Shown here: piece by piece, positions 1-17,772 of the stretch
How the letters are laid out: each line of letters begins with the position of its first letter
Numbering within the stretch: position 1 is the first letter of the stretch
Assembly: GCA_013416795.1 (NCBI GenBank)
Contig: RQSC01000062.1
Span: forward strand, 166,754-184,762
Origin: Prasinococcaceae sp. CCMP 1430
Lineage: Eukaryota > Plantae > Prasinodermophyta
Direction of reading: 5' to 3'
Length of the DNA stretch: 18,009 bases
Translations under genes and position numbers: made by a program
Notes under the pieces: generated by a model
The model's input: the letters and a program-made list of their open reading frames with translations, nothing else
Databases searched by the model: none
Told to the model about the DNA's origin: nothing

Positions 1-418
1 CGGACGCGCGCGCCAACAGCCCGCTGCGGCGCGCCGTGCCGTATGAGTTAGGGCGCGGCGGCGCCGGGCAACGCCCGCGCCCGAGCCCCCGGGACGTGCG
101 CGCGTGGGCCGGGAGCTGGTGACGGTCGAGCGGGCGCAAGCGTGCGCGCGCGCGTGTGTGTGTGGGGGGGGGATGGGGGGAGGAGGCGCCGGATTGCGAT
201 GCGGGGAGGGGGAGCTTGCCCGCGCGACGCCCTGCCTCCACGGGGCTGCGGCGCTCGCGCCGCCGATTGTCGATCTGCGTCTTTCGGAGCGCGCCTGCGA
301 TGCAACCGTGCGCTCGCCGCGGCGCGCAGCCGACCTCGTTAGCCGACGAGTAGCTGACCTCTCGCCCCCCACCCCCACCCCCCCTCACCCCCCCCGGCCG
401 TCCTCCATCCCACCGCAG
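1..418 (+). other. 3' part of the COPB2 first intron (donor not seen in the window)
   Basis: Branch motif GCTGAC at 353-358, AG-free C-rich tract 360-415, CAG at 416-418 directly before the in-frame PLRLE codons. No ATG followed by a GT donor occurs in 1-418. Confidence 0.75.
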
Positions 419-3250
419 CCGCTCCGCCTCGAGATCCAGCGCCAGCTGGCGCAGCGCTCGGACCGCGTCAAGAGCGTCGAGCTCCACCCGACGGAGCCAT
501 GGGTGCTGTGCAACCTGTACAGCGGCAGCATCTACATCTACAACACGCAGACGCAGGCGCTCGTGACGTCGTTCGAAGTGACCGAGCTGCCCGTGCGCTG
601 CGCCAAGTTTGTGGCGCGCAAGCAGTGGATCGTGTGCGGCGCCGACGACATGTTCATCCGTGTGTTCAACTACAACACGATGGACAGGGTCAAGGCGTTC
701 GAGGCGCACACGGACTACATCCGTTCGCTGGCGGTGCACCCGACGCTGCCCTACGTGATCTCGTCCAGTGACGACATGCTGATCAAGCTGTGGGACTGGG
801 ACAAGAACTGGGCGTGCACGCAGGTGTTCGAGGGCCACTCGCACTACGTCATGCAGCTGTGCTTCAACCCCAAGGACACCAACACCTTCGCGAGCGCCTC
901 GCTCGATCGCACGGTCAAGGTGTGGTCGCTGGGCTCGCCGGTGCCAAACTTCACCCTCGATGGCCACGAGAAGGGCGTCAACTGTATCGACTACTGCGCC
1001 AGCGGCGACCGGCCGTACCTGCTGTCGGGCGCCGACGACAAGCTGGTCAAGGTCTGGGACTATCAGACCAAGTCGTGCGTGCAGACGCTCGAGGGCCACA
1101 CGCACAACGTGAGCGCGGTCATGTTCCACCCCGAGCTGCCAGTCATCGTGACGGGCTCGGAGGACGGCACCGCCCGCATCTGGCACTCCACCACGTACCG
1201 CCTCGAAAACACGCTCAACTACGGCATGGAGCGCGTGTGGTCCATCGGCGGCGCCAAGGGCTCCAACCAGGTGGCGATCGGCTACGACGAGGGCACCGTC
1301 ATCATCAAGGTCGGCCGCGAGGACCCGGTGGCGAGCATGGACGGCAACGGTAAGATCGTGTGGGCGCGCCACAACGAGGTGCAGACAGTGAACGTCAAGT
1401 CGCTGCCCGCCGACTTCAAGATCACCGATGGCGAGCGCCTCCCGCTGGCCGTCAAGGAGATGGGCAGCACGGACCTGTACCCGCAGACACTGCGGCACAG
1501 CCCGAACGGCCGCTTCGTGGTGGTGTGTGGCGACGGCGAGTACGTCATCTACACGGCCCTGGCTTGGCGCAACAAGAGCTTTGGGCAGGCGCAGGAGTTC
1601 GCGTGGGGCGCCGACAACAACGTCTTCGCCGTGCGCGAGTCGAGCAGCAAGATCCGCATCTTCTCGAACTTCAAAGAGGCCAAGTCCATCCGCCCTGCGT
1701 TCCACGCCGAGGGCATTCACGGCGGCACCTTGATGGCGGTGCGCAGCTCAGACTTCGTGTGCTTCTACGACTGGGCCACCGCCAACGTTGTGCGCCGCAT
1801 CGATGTGGAGTGCAAAGCAGTGTACTGGTCAGACAATGGCGACCACGTGGTGATCGCCGGCGACGACAGCTTCTACGTGCTGCGCTACGACGCGGACGCG
1901 GTTGCGGCGGCGGTGGCGGCGGGTGAGGAGGTCGACGAGGACGGCGTCGAGGACTCGTTTGAGCTGCTTCACGAGATCAACGACACCGTGAAGACTGCTG
2001 TGTGGCTGGGCGATTGCTTCGTGTACACCACCGCGGGCAAGCGCCTCAACTACACGGTCGGCGGGGAGGTCACCACCATGTTTCACCTGGACAGGCCCAT
2101 GTACATCCTCGGCTACATGGCCGCCCAGAACCGCGTGTACCTGATGGACAAGGAGTTCGGCATCGTATCGTACACGCTGCAGCTGTCGATGATCGAGTAC
2201 AAGACGCTCGTGATGCGCGGCGACATGGAGTCGGCCGCGGAGGTGCTGCCCACCGTGCCCGTGGAGCAGCTGGACAGCGTCGCGCACTTTCTGGAGTCGC
2301 GCGGCGAGCTGGAGCTGGCGATATCGGTGGCGCAGGACAAGGACTTCAAGTTCGACCTCGCCATTCAGCTGGGGCGACTCGACATCGCCAGCGCGATCGC
2401 TGAGGAGGCCGAGAGCGAGAGCAAGTGGAAGCAGCTTGGGGAGCTCGCCATGTCCGCCGGCAAGCTCGGGGTGGCGCTGGAGTGCATGCGCAAGGCGGGC
2501 GACCTCAGCGGCCAGCTGCTGCTGCTTAGCTCGCTGGGCGACGCGGACGGCGTGCGCGACCTCGCCGCCGCGGCACAGGCCAAGGGCAAGACCAACGTTG
2601 CGTTCATCTGCCTGCTGCTGCTCGGGGAGACGTCGGCGTGCATCGACCTGCTGGAGAGGTGCGGGCGCGTGCCCGAGGCCGCCTTCATGGCGCGCACGTA
2701 CCTCCCCAGCCGCGTGTCGGACGCGGTCGAGCTGTGGAAGGCCGACCTCAAAAAGATCAACCTGAAGGCGGCGGAGGCGCTCGCCGACCCGAAGGAGTAC
2801 GCGAACCTGTTCCCCGACTTCGAGCTGGCCATGCAAGCTGAGAAGCTGTACGCACAGGCGAGCACCTCGCGCGAGGCTGCGACGTCGTACAAGGGCGCCG
2901 AGTTCTACCGCTCGCGCGATCTGCTGGAGGAGGCGCGCGGGGGCATCGCACCGGGCGGGGACGACGTTGCTGCTTCACCGGCGGACGTGGAGGCGGAAGA
3001 CATGGCCGAGGAGGACACGGCATCGCCGGAGCCCGAAGTAGCGACAGAGCCTGAGGCCGCCACACTGGAGGTCGAGGCGGAAGCGGAAGCCGAGGGGGAT
3101 GCGGATGCGGATGCGGAGGCGGAGGCGGAGGTGGAGGTGGAGGAGGAGGAGGAGGAGGAGGACGACGAGGATGATGATGAGGCGGACATGGCCGATGCGG
3201 CAGATGACCTCAACCTCGACGACGATGATGACTGGGGCGCCGACGACTAA
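419..3250 (+). CDS. COPB2: Coatomer subunit beta' (COPI, WD40 repeats plus coatomer WDAD solenoid); main coding exon. The initiator ATG is probably on an upstream exon outside the window.
   Basis: Translation from 419 is PLRLEIQRQLAQRSDRVKSVELHPTEPW..., matching the conserved beta'-COP N-terminus (MPLRL.IKRKL..RSDRVKSVDLHPTEPW). It has WD40 repeats (FEAHTDYIR, FEGHSHYVM, LEGHTHNVS) and an acidic tail, and stops at TAA 3248-3250. ORF residues encoded by 104-418 are intron-like: GCTGAC branch site 353-358, C-rich tract, CAG acceptor 416-418. Confidence 0.96.
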   Translation, partial: PLRLEIQRQLAQRSDRVKSVELHPTEPWVLCNLYSGSIYIYNTQTQALVTSFEVTELPVRCAKFVARKQWIVCGADDMFIRVFNYNTMDRVKAFEAHTDYIRSLAVHPTLPYVISSSDDMLIKLWDWDKNWACTQVFEGHSHYVMQLCFNPKDTNTFASASLDRTVKVWSLGSPVPNFTLDGHEKGVNCIDYCASGDRPYLLSGADDKLVKVWDYQTKSCVQTLEGHTHNVSAVMFHPELPVIVTGSEDGTARIWHSTTYRLENTLNYGMERVWSIGGAKGSNQVAIGYDEGTVIIKVGREDPVASMDGNGKIVWARHNEVQTVNVKSLPADFKITDGERLPLAVKEMGSTDLYPQTLRHSPNGRFVVVCGDGEYVIYTALAWRNKSFGQAQEFAWGADNNVFAVRESSSKIRIFSNFKEAKSIRPAFHAEGIHGGTLMAVRSSDFVCFYDWATANVVRRIDVECKAVYWSDNGDHVVIAGDDSFYVLRYDADAVAAAVAAGEEVDEDGVEDSFELLHEINDTVKTAVWLGDCFVYTTAGKRLNYTVGGEVTTMFHLDRPMYILGYMAAQNRVYLMDKEFGIVSYTLQLSMIEYKTLVMRGDMESAAEVLPTVPVEQLDSVAHFLESRGELELAISVAQDKDFKFDLAIQLGRLDIASAIAEEAESESKWKQLGELAMSAGKLGVALECMRKAGDLSGQLLLLSSLGDADGVRDLAAAAQAKGKTNVAFICLLLLGETSACIDLLERCGRVPEAAFMARTYLPSRVSDAVELWKADLKKINLKAAEALADPKEYANLFPDFELAMQAEKLYAQASTSREAATSYKGAEFYRSRDLLEEARGGIAPGGDDVAASPADVEAEDMAEEDTASPEPEVATEPEAATLEVEAEAEAEGDADADAEAEAEVEVEEEEEEEDDEDDDEADMADAADDLNLDDDDDWGADD
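2960..3250 (+). repeat. Low-complexity acidic coding tail of COPB2 (GAG/GAC/GCG-rich trinucleotide runs)
   Basis: Encodes ...EAEAEAEGDADADAEAEAEVEVEEEEEEEDDEDDDEADMADAADDLNLDDDDDWGADD; a (GAG)n run lies around 3140-3160. Confidence 0.85.
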
Positions 3251-3272
3251 AGAGGGCAGTCGGCGAACGCTA

Positions 3273-3408
3273 TTACAGTTTACTTGAAGAGGGACCCTGC
3301 CCACGAGTAATTACGACCTCCCTTTTTACAACCGCGCTCAGCGACGCGCCTGCGCACGCGCGCGCGTCGATCGGTCCGCTGGCAATGTATCACATAGAAA
3401 AAATTACA
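3273..3408 (-). promoter_or_regulatory. Three TGTAA (chlorophyte-type polyadenylation signal) candidates downstream of the PAM71-like gene
   Basis: TTACA on the + strand at 3404-3408, 3326-3330 and 3273-3277. UGUAA is the established poly(A) signal in Chlamydomonas-type green algae. Confidence 0.5.
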
Positions 3409-3411
3409 TCG

Positions 3412-4250
3412 CTAATTACTGAGCCCTGCGTCGACGAACGTGGCGAGCGCGAAGAAGAGGAAGAGCGACCCGCCCGCGTAGCCGATGACCTTCTCGTCGA
3501 CGCGCTCCTTGAGCGCCTCGCCCGTGAAGACGGCGATGAGGCAGATGGGAAAGAACCCCGCGATGGCGCCCGTGATCACCGAGGAGGGCGGCGCGCTCGC
3601 CGCGAGCGCGATGGTCGCAAGCTGGCTCTTGTCGCCCCACTCCGCCGCGAAGACCAGGGCGAACGTGCTCGCCACCATCTTGCCAAATTCGCCCCCGACG
3701 AAGTCGGCGATGGCCTCCTCCGCATCCTCCGCCTCCTCGGCCATCTTCACGTTGCCCGATTCGAGCTCATAGGTCTCCTTGAGGGTGCTGTAGCCGAACC
3801 AGAGCAGGAGGGTGCCCGCGAAGAGGTCGTCGAGCGGCAGCCCCGCCAGCGGCCCCGGCAGCTCGAGCGACGCGTCGGCGAGGTGCAGCGCCTCGCCGAG
3901 CGCGGCGCTCACGAGGGTCATCGCCGAGAGCGCGCCGAACGTGCCGAGGAAGACGCTGCCCTTGGACTGGCGCAGCGCGAGCAGCACGGCAATGAAGAAG
4001 GTCTTGTCGCCAATCTCGCTGAAGAAGATCAGCAGGAACGACTTGACGAAGCCCGACGACGCGTCGAGCGTCGCGACGTCACCGGCCGCCGAGGCGAGGT
4101 CGAACGCGGCGGTGGCGGACGCGGCGGCGGGCGCCACTGCGTGCGGCGTGGCCAGCGCGAGTGAGACCTGCGCCGCGTCGGCCACCGCACACGCGTCCAC
4201 GCAGGTTGCCGCGCAGCGCACTCCTGCTGCGCGCGCTCGTCCCCCGCGCC
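3412..4250 (-). CDS. PAM71: GDT1/UPF0016 family Mn2+/Ca2+ transporter, chloroplast PAM71-like; 5'-truncated at the gap
   Basis: Two UPF0016 signature motifs, FFSEIGDKTF and FAAEWGDKSQ. The segment GFVKSFLLIFFSEIGDKTFFIA...LPLDDLFAGTLLLWFGYSTL resembles plant PAM71 as I recall it. The frame stays open from GTG 4221 to the N at 4251 (RGGRARAAGVRCAA, transit-peptide-like) with no ATG. Stop TAG at 3414-3412. Confidence 0.88.
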
Positions 4251-4251
4251 N
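4251..4251. other. Assembly join (single N)
   Basis: One N between two divergent genes that both lack their 5' ends. Confidence 0.9.
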
Positions 4252-4628
4252 TGTACGAGGCCGGTGAGTCGCCCGATCACATCGTCGTGATCAAGTACCT
4301 GCCGTACGTGGGTGACTCGAAGCGTGCGATGGACGAGTACACCTCGGAGCTGTTCATGAATGGCAAGAACACCATCGTCATGCACAACACGTGTGAGGAC
4401 TCGCTGCTCGCAGCGCCCATCATTCTCGACCTGGTGCTGCTGGCCGAACTCATTACGCGCATCGAACTCAGGAAGGACGGCGAGGAGTTCCACGGCTTCC
4501 ACCCGGTCGCCGTGCTGCTTTCGTATCTCACCAAGGCGCCGCTGGTGCCCGAGGGCACTCCTGTCGTGAACGCCCTCGCGAAGCAGCGTGCGATGCTCGA
4601 GAACATCATGCGCGCGTGCGTGGGCCTG
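4251..4628 (+). CDS. INO1: myo-inositol-1-phosphate synthase (MIPS/INO1), C-terminal ~125-aa fragment; first part of the fusion ORF 4251-5306
   Basis: [66 protein letters not shown]...[37 protein letters not shown] is the plant/algal MIPS C-terminus. It begins at the N at 4251 and lacks the usual terminal APENNM.LEYK-type residues. Confidence 0.93.
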
Positions 4629-5306
4629 CTGTGGCGCGGTGCGGGGGCGGCGTTTGACGCGGCCGCGCACCTCGACGGCGAGGCGGCGCCGCGCGTGGCG
4701 GGCTTCGATCTAGACGGCACGCTCGTCAAAACCGAGTCCGGTGAGAAGAAGTTCGCCCACTCGGCGTCCGACTGGAAGCTCTTCAGCGAGGGAGTCGTGC
4801 CCGCCGTGCGCAGGCTGCACGCCGCCGGCCACATCATCGTCATCTTCTCCAACCAGAACAGCGTCAAGGGGGCGCTGGAAGGCAAGGCCGCGGCCAAGGT
4901 CAAGGGCAGGCTCGACCAGGTGATCGCAGAGCTCGGCGTGCCGGCGTTCGCCTTCGCCGCCACGCAGAAGGGCGACAAGGATCCGCAGTGCTACCGCAAG
5001 CCGCACGCGGGCATGTGGCAGCTCTTCGTGCGCTCGTGCCTGGGCGGGCGCGCGCCCGACATTGCGAGGAGCGTGTACGTGGGCGACGCGGCCGGGCGGG
5101 AGGGGGACTTCGCCGACACGGACAAGGGATTTGCGGACGCCGTCGGGGTGCGCTTCCTCACGCCCGAGGAGGCCTTCGGCGATGACAGCGCGGCGGCGCT
5201 CGAGTTTGCGGCAGGCCCCGCCGACGCCGCCGACGCGGCGGAGAGGCGGGATGGGCCGGCCGGGGGGGCAGTAGTAGACGACGGGCGTCCCGAGTCGACA
5301 CCGTGA
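4629..5306 (+). CDS. Polynucleotide/DNA 3'-phosphatase domain (PNK3P, HAD IIIA; PNKP/Tpp1/ZDP-like, no kinase domain); second part of the fusion ORF
   Basis: HAD motif [14 protein letters not shown] (DLDGT at 4707-4721), DWK, motif II IVIFSNQ, motif [12 protein letters not shown], motif [32 protein letters not shown]. Stop TGA at 5304-5306. Confidence 0.9.
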
Positions 5307-5327
5307 GACCTACCGCTGACGGTGCTG

Positions 5328-5332
5328 TGTAA
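5328..5332 (+). promoter_or_regulatory. TGTAA polyadenylation-signal candidate for the INO1::PNK3P ORF
   Basis: TGTAA 22 nt after the TGA at 5306. Confidence 0.5.
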
Positions 5333-5521
5333 TATGGTAATGATTGCGTGCGCACGCTCGCGCGCTCCGACCCCGCTCCGCCGCTCATGCGAGGAATGCC
5401 TCCGCTCGGTGCGACCAATCGCTCCTCTTTTATTATCCCTGCGGCTGTGTCCTGGTGCCCAGTGCGTCGTATTAAGTGCACCGACTTGCAGCAGGTGTGC
5501 ACGTAGCCAAGCGGGGCGAGC

Positions 5522-6464
5522 TCACGCGAGCCTGGGGACGAGTGGCGCATGCGCCCTCGTCAGTTCCTATCCATGCGGGGACGCGACCACTCGCCCTCGA
5601 TCTGCGAACGCGGGCGCCGGCATGCGCGCGCGAGGCGCATGCGCGCCTCTCACTGTCCGCAGTCGACGACGACGATCGGCTGCGTTGTCCTGCCGCTTAT
5701 GGAGCCGCACTCCATGATCTTCTCGAAGACGTGCATGGTGTCCTCGGTGACCTTGCCGAAGGCGACGTGCTTGCCGTCGAGCCAGGGCGAGGGCGCCTCA
5801 ACGATGAAGAACTGCGAGCTGTTGGTATCCCTGCCGCCGTTAGCCATCGACACGATACCCACCGAGTCGTGCCGCACGGTGAAGTTCTCGTCGGCAAAGC
5901 TCGTGCCGTAAATCGACTCGCCGCCCGTGCCGTTGCCGCGCACAAAGTCACCGCCCTGTGCGATGAAGTGCTTTATCACGCGGTAAAAGATGGAGCCCCG
6001 GTAGCACAGCGGCCGCCCCGACGCGCCCACGCCCTTCTCGCCCGTGCACAGGCAGCGAAAGTTCTCCGCGGTCTTTGGCACCTTGTGGGGCGGCGGGAAG
6101 GGAGGGGCGGAGGAGGCACGCGCCAGAGCGCCAGGCAGGCGGCCGACAGTCCGGGGATGTGCAAAATATTCGTGTGCGGCGGCAAGCGCGGACGGAAGGG
6201 GAGTGGAGGGGATTCAAGGTCAGCGCATGGTGCGTGCGCAACGATGCGCAATGAGATTTGCAGCTATGTCCACGCCCGCGCTGGTGCCTGCAGCCACCAC
6301 CACGACCATGGCGCGCCCTGCTCCGCCGTTCCCCCCCCCCACCGCCCTTCACGACCGCGCCCCGCCGCAGCCGCGCTCACTTTGTCGTTGAAGAGGTCGA
6401 TCTCCAGCCTGCCGCAGTGCTTCGCGCCGATGGACACGTCCAGGTACACGCGCGGCCTCCCCAT
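5522..6464 (-). CDS. Single-domain cyclophilin (peptidyl-prolyl cis-trans isomerase), divergent-loop type; exons 6464-6381, 6081-5654, 5531-5522 (173 aa)
   Basis: Exon 1 [28 protein letters not shown] ends at a GTGAGC donor. Exon 2 is [46 protein letters not shown]...[12 protein letters not shown]. Splicing CA|GTGAGA (5653) to CCCCAG|G (5532) adds CTC GCG TGA, giving DCGQLA*. The exon 3 call is less certain than exons 1-2. Confidence 0.92.
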
Positions 6465-6519
6465 CGCCGCGGCCACGGCCGCTCGCGCGCGCGCGCGCCC
6501 CACGAAACGACCAACCAAT

Positions 6520-6784: not shown

Positions 6785-6942
6785 CGCCACAGTGGAGTTT
6801 GGGTGAATGTTTGGGGTTAGAGATAGGGTTCGTGTCAGGCGGAATTGAACCTTATCCAGCGGGCAGGCGGCGGATGTCCGCGGCCACACAAGTTTTTTCC
6901 CGGGCGGCGCGGCGCGCGGCGGGCGCGTGGCACTATCCACCG

Positions 6943-6961
6943 AGTGCGCGTGTTGTGTGTT

Positions 6962-7018
<57 letters not shown>

Positions 7019-7161
7019 ACGAGCATTCACGGGTCGGCGTGCGTGTGTATGCGCGCGTGTGTGAGCACCAATGTGCAAGCGCGTGCAGAGTACGCCCTCG
7101 CACACACGCACACATGCGCGCGCGCGCGCGCGCGCGTCCCCGTGTGTGTGTGTGTGTGTGT
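6943..7161. repeat. (GT)n/(CA)n/(CG)n microsatellite cluster running into the gap
   Basis: (GT)23 at 6969-7014, CACACGCACAC and a (CG)n run near 7100-7136, and (GT)~10 at 7142-7161 adjoining the Ns. Confidence 0.95.
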
Positions 7162-7241
7162 NNNNNNNNNNNNNNNNNNNNNNNNNNNNNNNNNNNNNNN
7201 NNNNNNNNNNNNNNNNNNNNNNNNNNNNNNNNNNNNNNNNN
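7162..7241. other. Assembly gap (80 N)
   Basis: N run following a (GT)n tract. Confidence 0.99.
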
Positions 7242-14278: not shown

Positions 14279-15807
<1,529 letters not shown>

Positions 15808-15872: not shown

Positions 15873-16137
15873 NNNNNNNNNNNNNNNNNNNNNNNNNNNN
15901 NNNNNNNNNNNNNNNNNNNNNNNNNNNNNNNNNNNNNNNNNNNNNNNNNNNNNNNNNNNNNNNNNNNNNNNNNNNNNNNNNNNNNNNNNNNNNNNNNNNN
16001 NNNNNNNNNNNNNNNNNNNNNNNNNNNNNNNNNNNNNNNNNNNNNNNNNNNNNNNNNNNNNNNNNNNNNNNNNNNNNNNNNNNNNNNNNNNNNNNNNNNN
16101 NNNNNNNNNNNNNNNNNNNNNNNNNNNNNNNNNNNNN
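15873..16137. other. Assembly gap (265 N)
   Basis: N run upstream of RUVBL1, followed by a poly-A/poly-G tract. Confidence 0.99.
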
Positions 16138-16655: not shown

Positions 16656-17772
16656 ATGGCAATGGCGAGCGCGGCTGCGCCGCGCGTGGCGTACCAGGGC
16701 ATGCCTGGGGCGTACTCCGAACGCGCCGCGCAGCTCGCGTACCCGGACTGCGTGCCAACCCCGTGCGACCAGTTCGAGGGCGCGTTCGCATCGGTCGAGC
16801 AGTGGACGGCCGACCGCGCTGTGCTGCCGCTCGGTGCGTCGCGCGAGCGCGCGACGCGGCGACGCGCTGCGCGCGAAGCGAGCGCGCGGGCGACGGGCTC
16901 GCGCGCCCTGGGCCTGCACCTCCATCTCCCGCTGACCCTCGGTGGCCGACCTCCCTCCCTTCGCACCCATCTGCGCCCCTCCGCGCCCTCTGCCCCCCCC
17001 GGCAGAGAATTCGCTGGGCGGCTCCATCCACCGCAACTACGACCTGCTGATGCAGCACCGGCTGCATATCGTGGGCGAGGTGAGCCTGAAGGTGCATCAC
17101 TGCCTGCTGGCGCTGCCGGGGACGAAGATCGAGGACCTCAATCGCGTGGCGAGCCATCCGCAGGCGCTCGCGCAGTGCGAGGGGTACCTGGACGGTCTGG
17201 GCAACAAGGACCTCAAGCGCGAGGCCGTCTTCGACACGGCCGGGGCGGCGGCGGACATCGCCGAGCGGAATCTCGAGGGGAGCGCGGCCATCGCATCGCG
17301 GCACGCCGCGGAGATCTATGGGCTTGAAATTCTAGCCGAGGGCATCCAGGACGACCCCAGCAACGTGACGCGCTTCATGGCGCTCTCGCGGGATCCGCTC
17401 ACGCGCGACACGCTGGGCGGCGCGGGAAGCGACGACACGTCGAACGCAACGGTCGCCATGAAGACCTCGCTGGTCTTCTCGTTGGACGAGGGCCCCGGCA
17501 TGCTCTTTAAGGCGCTGTCCGTGTTCGCGCTGCGCGACATCGACATGACCAAGATCGAGTCGCGCCCCCTGCGCACCAACCCGCTGCGCGAGGTCGACGG
17601 CGTCCAGGGCGTGCCCGGCGGCTCGAGGTTCAACTACCTGTTCTACGTGGACATCCTCGCCGGCATGGACGAGGAGGCCGCGCAGAACGCGCTCCGGCAC
17701 CTGCAGGAGATCAGCCCGTTCCTGAGGGTGCTCGGCTCGTACCCGGCGCAGCCATTCAGGGCACAGGCATGA
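16656..17772 (+). CDS. ADT: Arogenate/prephenate dehydratase (PDT plus ACT domain); exons 16656-16833 and 17006-17772 (314 aa); start codon uncertain
   Basis: [13 protein letters not shown], spliced [90 protein letters not shown]. Donor G|GTGCGT at 16834, branch GCTGAC 16931, acceptor CAG|AG at 17005. Confidence 0.93.

Follow-up and report, generated by a model that had tools for sequence, protein, structure and literature searches.

Does the alga whose DNA was analysed here make an enzyme in which myo-inositol-1-phosphate synthase (INO1/MIPS) is fused to a DNA 3'-phosphatase of the PNK3P type? The question arises from one open reading frame in a stretch of 18,009 nucleotides, referred to here as the window. 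The preliminary description of this frame had offered two readings, a bifunctional MIPS-phosphatase that would replace IMPase or link inositol synthesis to DNA repair, and an assembly chimera formed at a short microhomology. Independent contigs, separate gene models of the species and a protein search that returned single-domain matches all agree with the second reading. We therefore interpret the apparent fusion, with a probability of about 0.9, as the wrongly assembled end of a contig that borders a scaffold gap, and not as an enzyme fusion. The first reading did not hold: a quarter of MIPS is all that is present, Prasinoderma coloniale has two separate intact genes, and a protein made of both parts was not encountered among the 150 top-scoring matches of the search.

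As far as the letters go, the frame is as it had been described. A stop-free ORF runs from 4161 to 5306(+), with a single X where an N sits at 4251, and leads in one open frame from the MIPS C-terminus (4254-4628) into a complete PNK3P phosphatase of the HAD type, which ends with TGA at 5304-5306. The TGTAA noted behind the stop codon is likewise present, at 5328-5332(+), 22 bp past the stop; it is a candidate for the polyadenylation signal used by green algae. The claim of a complete phosphatase with its HAD motifs was also borne out. Pfam matched PNK3P over the full domain (profile positions 2-161 of 161, E 5e-43), and the score for PF08645, over the full profile length, was 147 bits where 22 suffice. 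Within the phosphatase part, DLDGT, the HAD motif I, lies from 4707(+) on, and residues 146-320 align with the phosphatase domain of mammalian PNKP.

The MIPS side of the frame looks different. Here the Pfam matches cover C-terminal ends only, namely profile positions 250-321 of 321 for NAD_binding_5 and 65-107 of 107 for Inos-1-P_synth, and the first 126 residues, the MIPS part, align with residues 380-506 of a solved plant MIPS of 516 aa. It had been stated that only the last ~11 MIPS residues are missing. This is correct for the C-terminus, where, with the P. coloniale protein P0271 as reference, exactly 11 residues (PPENNMMLEHK) are absent from the window, but it overlooks that just 125 of 507 MIPS residues are present, starting at 4252, one base past the single-N join. 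A natural fusion with both domains complete is thus not what the window holds, and neither the complete NAD-binding (Rossmann) domain nor the complete catalytic domain of MIPS is found in residues 372-496. The "MIPS" part of the window is a fragment, not MIPS. The open frame itself carries little weight, because a join falls in frame by chance in one of three cases and long open frames are common in DNA of ~69% GC. Two Met-started chimeric products are possible (from 4329 and from 4356), and an exact look-up of both in the protein collection gave no match, a blank that speaks for neither reading.

The origin of the MIPS piece (4252-4629(+), 378 bp, codons 372-496 of 507) could be traced. A word search with the MIPS part led to three metagenome proteins of 397 aa that are 100% identical to it and whose C-terminal end reads ...ACVGLPPENNMMLEHK. 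At the DNA level, window 4252-4629 is 100% identical over 378 bp to the Tara Oceans contigs L001 (1328-1705) and L002, which encode such 397-aa proteins; when both contigs were compared with the whole window, no match outside 4252-4629 was found. Eight further MIPS contigs matched the 378 bp at 100% (L009) or 99.7% (L005-L008 and L010-L012). All ten ocean-metagenome MIPS contigs extend beyond the equivalent of 4629, and on each of the six that have a complete, Pfam-bearing annotated neighbour, the gene downstream of MIPS is an EF-hand gene on the opposite strand and never PNK3P. The species' own MIPS is complete: by cluster look-up, P0271 is the EukProt entry PRCOL_00004431-RA of P. coloniale and also UniRef A0A7R9Y2L4, an inositol-3-phosphate synthase of 507 aa. 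Its residues 372-496 equal window 4254-4628 at 100%, after which the protein runs past the switch point and finishes with the 11 residues named above, the normal ...CVGLPPENNMMLEHK end. The piece is consequently misplaced. It resembles MIPS in reproducing codons 372-496 of the gene of this species without a difference, and it differs in holding the last quarter only, with the NAD-binding domain starting from profile position 250 of 321, whereas the true 507-aa gene lies elsewhere in the genome, in two coding pieces and next to the EF-hand gene. On the metagenome contigs the MIPS gene is called as two ORFs (L001:79-465 and 547-1740), and the break of ~80 bp between them is probably one short intron in the gene modelled as PRCOL_00004431.

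The phosphatase, too, belongs to a gene of its own. Cluster look-up assigned it to P0279, the P. coloniale model PRCOL_00001017-RA, a stand-alone PNK3P protein of 273 aa. Residues 48-273 of P0279 match window 4626-5303 at 100% in tblastn, even at five sites where the metagenome strains have something else, so that codons 48-273 and the stop codon occupy 4626-5306(+). The protein has its own N-terminus, MERFLVAKR...EWRARDGS, with residues 1-47 reading MERFLVAKRTRDG...KRARSSEWRARDGS. This leader is rich in Gly and Ala and includes the basic patch KRAR. Algal homologues at a greater distance begin in a similar way to its MERFL...KR (P0126 MERFLKR..., P0153 MENFFKR...). Residues 1-47 were absent from the 18-kb window when sought by tblastn, which returned low-complexity noise only. 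By the same result, an arrangement in which this N-terminus is an upstream exon within the window and the MIPS piece an intron was ruled out. A separate INO1 3' end and a separate PNK3P 5' end, as proposed for a check, hence both exist in independent assemblies and gene models. With INO1 running on to an end of the ...PENNM type and PNK3P possessing N-terminal codons of its own, the fusion is refuted at the level of independent assemblies and gene models.

P0279 passes TIGR01664, the equivalog-domain model for DNA 3'-phosphatases, with 136.2 bits (cut-off 107.65), and fails TIGR01663, the model for bifunctional PNKP, with 109 bits (cut-off 502.8) and a match confined to profile positions 163-336 of 520. 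Past the HAD core there are just 30-40 more residues, and the C-terminal P-loop 5'-kinase domain is missing. Its HAD motifs FDLDGT (D75, D77), IFSNQ, YRKP and VGDAAGR are in register with those of mouse PNKP (3zvl), and the alignment to the PNKP phosphatase domain extends over ~175-200 residues (E 1e-23). A Pfam scan that covered the phosphatase part within the window, residues 48-273, revealed no FHA or PARP-type zinc-finger domain. With the PNK3P/HAD-IIIA DNA 3'-phosphatases (yeast Tpp1, mammalian PNKP, plant ZDP) P0279 thus shares a passing score in the Pfam PNK3P and NCBIfam DNA-3'-Pase models as well as the retained DxDGT, the SNQ motif, the RKP lysine and GDAAGR. It differs from PNKP in having no kinase domain, and the short N-terminal leader as the sole addition ahead of the HAD core is what we assume to be its likeness to Tpp1. 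On these sequence features, the real gene is predicted to encode an ordinary DNA 3'-phosphatase that, like Tpp1, stands alone and lacks kinase, FHA and zinc-finger domains. Its presumed task is to clear 3'-phosphates from broken DNA strands, and inositol metabolism has no part in it.

What the window lacks becomes apparent from the neighbouring genes. On the left, a gene for a cation transporter of the GDT1/TMEM165 family (3412-4185(-), 257 aa, P0284; Pfam GDT1, E 3.5e-35), the product of which is found on six metagenome contigs, is followed by its 5' flank and the end of the left contig (4186-4250). These six contigs (L013-L018) match the window at 99.0-99.6%. On the Tara contigs L013-L017 the match spans window 207-4250, ends at 4250 in each case and is followed by 205-651 bp of further sequence; on L018 it ends at 4223. 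The sequence beyond 4250 coincides, at 94-100% identity, with the initial 134-599 bp of L003 and L004, two contigs that carry PNK3P. The scaffold therefore has its genes in the right order, with GDT1(-) as the phosphatase's divergent neighbour. On the right, L003, the contig of protein P0121, matches window 4610-6492 at 98.4% and likewise contains the convergent downstream neighbour, a cyclophilin gene (5650-6081(-); Pfam Pro_isomerase, E 1.7e-36), which adjoins the phosphatase gene on all ten contigs shown (L019-L028). Read from these contigs, the native order is GDT1(-), a spacer of ~540 bp, the 273-aa PNK3P-type phosphatase(+) and cyclophilin(-).

The suspect join that had been pointed out upstream of the switch is thereby substantiated. 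The homology of the GDT1 flank halts exactly at 4250, where the contigs go on with native DNA, a single N occupies 4251, and the homology to MIPS starts at 4252. The N cannot be a mere ambiguous base, since homologies to unrelated loci end and start on its two sides. This scaffold join covers ~720 bp of native DNA, the spacer and phosphatase codons 1-47, which in the window are swapped for the N and 372-378 bp of MIPS. An exact look-up of contigs encoding P0279 gave no gene on record. We rebuilt the bridge from L015 (1-651, reverse) and L003 (600-673), so that the native 5' end of the phosphatase gene is read from metagenome strains that are 94-99% identical. The resulting 725 bp carry the start codon of the phosphatase (MERFL at ~base 590) and have a GC content of 80% overall and of 85-91% at both ends (100-bp windows), with runs of G and C only of up to 33 bases. 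P. coloniale-like populations with DNA 97-100% identical to the window occur in many Tara Oceans metagenome assemblies (L001-L028, from ENA assemblies and Logan runs), and their contigs offer a convenient control for other doubtful joins in this genome.

Three-way DNA alignments placed the switch from MIPS to phosphatase inside GCCTGC at 4624-4629(+), a microhomology that MIPS and the native PNK3P gene have in common. From there MIPS goes on with CTCCAGAG..., and the native phosphatase sequence is preceded by ...GACGGCA. A short microhomology had been proposed correctly, but its sequence, given as GGCCTG, is GCCTGC when compared with native PNK3P sequences. With cyclophilin as anchor, ten contigs (L019-L028) were examined from a set of at least 24 on which this gene is present. 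Nine of the ten show the native ...KRARSSEWRARDGS followed by LLWRGAG (...EWRARDGS, then LLWRG) across the switch point; all anchored contigs that reach this point are native there, and MIPS DNA was found in none of the ten. Seven of them stop 20-55 bp upstream of the switch point, inside the GC-rich Gly/Ala tract. One contig, L023 (Tara SAMEA6037123 scaffold_53593), diverges at the equivalent of 4696 into ~94 nt (2283-2376) with 58% GC that gave no match when compared with all fetched loci; here the GC-rich boundary may have given rise to a further chimeric contig end, or the variant may be real. The product of L023 (P0281) starts with MLVV followed by FDLDGT. The seven interrupted contigs together with the odd end of L023 suggest that short-read assemblies habitually break at this GC-rich boundary. 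Overall, the junction of the window did not recur in the gene models of the species, where the two PRCOL models are separate, or in independent contigs, where nine of ten PNK3P contigs and all ten MIPS contigs are native. When JGI metagenome contigs were scanned with 34 nt of the chimeric junction, no match appeared, but 35 nt of the native junction, used as a positive control, had none either. This collection does not contain the locus, so neither blank is informative.

A real strain-specific rearrangement would also place MIPS DNA at this position, and we consider it an unlikely explanation, though the best of the alternatives. It would have been a very recent event in the sequenced culture: the phosphatase gene suffered a double-strand break in its GC-rich 5' part, and microhomology-mediated repair captured a MIPS fragment of 378 bp or more there, at the cost of ~720 bp that comprised the promoter and codons 1-47. 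The 6 bp of microhomology at the junction are typical of microhomology-mediated end joining, the 100% identity of the piece to the functional MIPS gene fits a very recent origin, and the join is in frame. However, the left junction of such an insertion is missing from the assembly, with the N exactly where the MIPS piece begins. The P. coloniale model, which equals the window in all of 226 residues, has the native N-terminus, and every wild contig extending to the switch point is native there. The high GC content, together with contigs that break here repeatedly, accounts for the gap without any rearrangement. Even if the rearrangement were real, the outcome would be a disabled phosphatase gene and not a bifunctional enzyme, because three quarters of MIPS and the start of the phosphatase are absent. 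In that case, an enzyme that cleans DNA ends would have been knocked out in a lineage for which an unusually low mutation rate has been reported.

A genuine full-length MIPS-PNK3P fusion would require the gap at 4251 to conceal MIPS codons 1-371, and the HAD domain could then dephosphorylate inositol-3-phosphate in place of IMPase. The open frame over the join, the intact HAD motifs and the stop codon with the TGTAA behind it would agree with such an enzyme. We searched 1.84 billion representative proteins exhaustively, with matches ranked by whole-protein score, and none of the 150 top-scoring proteins considered matched both the MIPS and the PNK3P part. The best match, P0121, is a PNK3P-only protein of 292 aa (462 bits) that is 96% identical from LLWRGAG on and has its own N-terminus, and the next-best representatives are single-domain proteins with at most 219 bits. 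As the ranking used the whole-protein score, a two-part protein would have been placed far above such single-domain matches. In addition, related strains bridge the gap with the native spacer and the N-terminal coding sequence of the phosphatase, without MIPS, a separate 507-aa MIPS with canonical end exists in the species, and the HAD domain is recognised by the DNA 3'-phosphatase model TIGR01664. We consequently give this fusion hardly any chance. Just as improbable is an old, fixed MIPS pseudogene fragment in the 5' region of the phosphatase gene, for example one read as an intron or 5' UTR, for which nothing but the presence of the fragment speaks, since the fragment is 100% identical to the functional gene without any decay, replaces essential conserved coding sequence instead of adding to it, and is missing from every related contig.

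The mis-assembled contig end, on the other hand, is consistent with the entire setting of the MIPS piece, which is bounded by a scaffold join and a 6-bp microhomology, replaces conserved coding sequence, occurs in no independent source and adjoins a block of extreme GC content. The window would derive from a gapped, scaffolded assembly of P. coloniale or a near-identical strain. Short-read coverage would have failed in the GC block formed by the spacer and the Gly/Ala-rich first 47 codons (80-91% GC). The contig to the right of the N would then carry a false left end, 378 bp of a MIPS gene from elsewhere in the genome attached to phosphatase codon 48 via the microhomology. It might have been extended by a chimeric molecule, produced by template switching or ligation in library preparation, or by a gap-filling step; polymerase stalling in the GC block and a template switch during library amplification would be a plausible source of the chimera. 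The scaffolder could subsequently have set both contigs side by side with a minimal gap. An overlap of 6 bp is too short for a k-mer or overlap mis-join, which favours a chimeric template. Two observations argue against an artefact: the short microhomology would require a chimeric molecule or an over-eager gap filler, and the join is in frame, although this has a one-in-three chance.

Chimeric contig ends at GC-rich gaps of short-read scaffolds share several features with this case. The foreign piece lies exactly between the scaffold N and the resumed native homology, the missing DNA is 80-91% GC, and independent assemblies break at the same place, in L023 with an unrelated end. The difference is the 6-bp microhomology, which a chimeric template would explain better than a k-mer mis-join. 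The published long-read assembly of P. coloniale is described as PacBio contigs in 22 chromosomes, with MAKER models. As the window contains N runs of 1, 80 and 265 bases, it appears to come from another, scaffolded assembly. PRCOL_00001017 would likewise have been modelled on a different assembly than the window, because its first 47 codons are absent from the latter.

As biology, the apparent fusion has no significance: it provides neither a link between inositol synthesis and DNA repair nor a replacement of IMPase. For annotation it matters more, as a gene model built on the window would yield a false Rosetta-stone fusion and a phosphatase without its true start. Similar false fusions in this assembly could be sought by their signature: next to a block of 80-91% GC, a piece of another gene, 100% identical to it, fills the space from a single N to where native homology resumes. 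GC blocks like the spacer between GDT1 and the phosphatase gene are likely sites of further gaps or false joins in this assembly.

Other weak spots exist within the window. Microsatellite tracts of the type (GT/CA)n at 6830-7161, which translate into poly-Cys-Val or Thr-His, run straight into the 80-N gap (7162-7241), and this gap is another contig break at low-complexity DNA. An ORF for a RuvB-like TIP49 ATPase (14279-15490(-)) starts at position 41 of the P-loop domain profile, and an ORF for prephenate dehydratase (16942-17772(+)) matches its profile from position 49 of 181 on. The N-terminus seems to be incomplete in both, and the missing upstream exons or sequence may lie in the 265-N gap at 15873-16137. 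At the left end of the window, an intronless ORF of 1048 aa (104-3250(+)) resembles, by eye, WD40 or coatomer beta'-like proteins and has a long acidic Glu/Asp/Ala tail; its homologue on the Tara contig L014 matches many WD40 beta-propeller families of Pfam.
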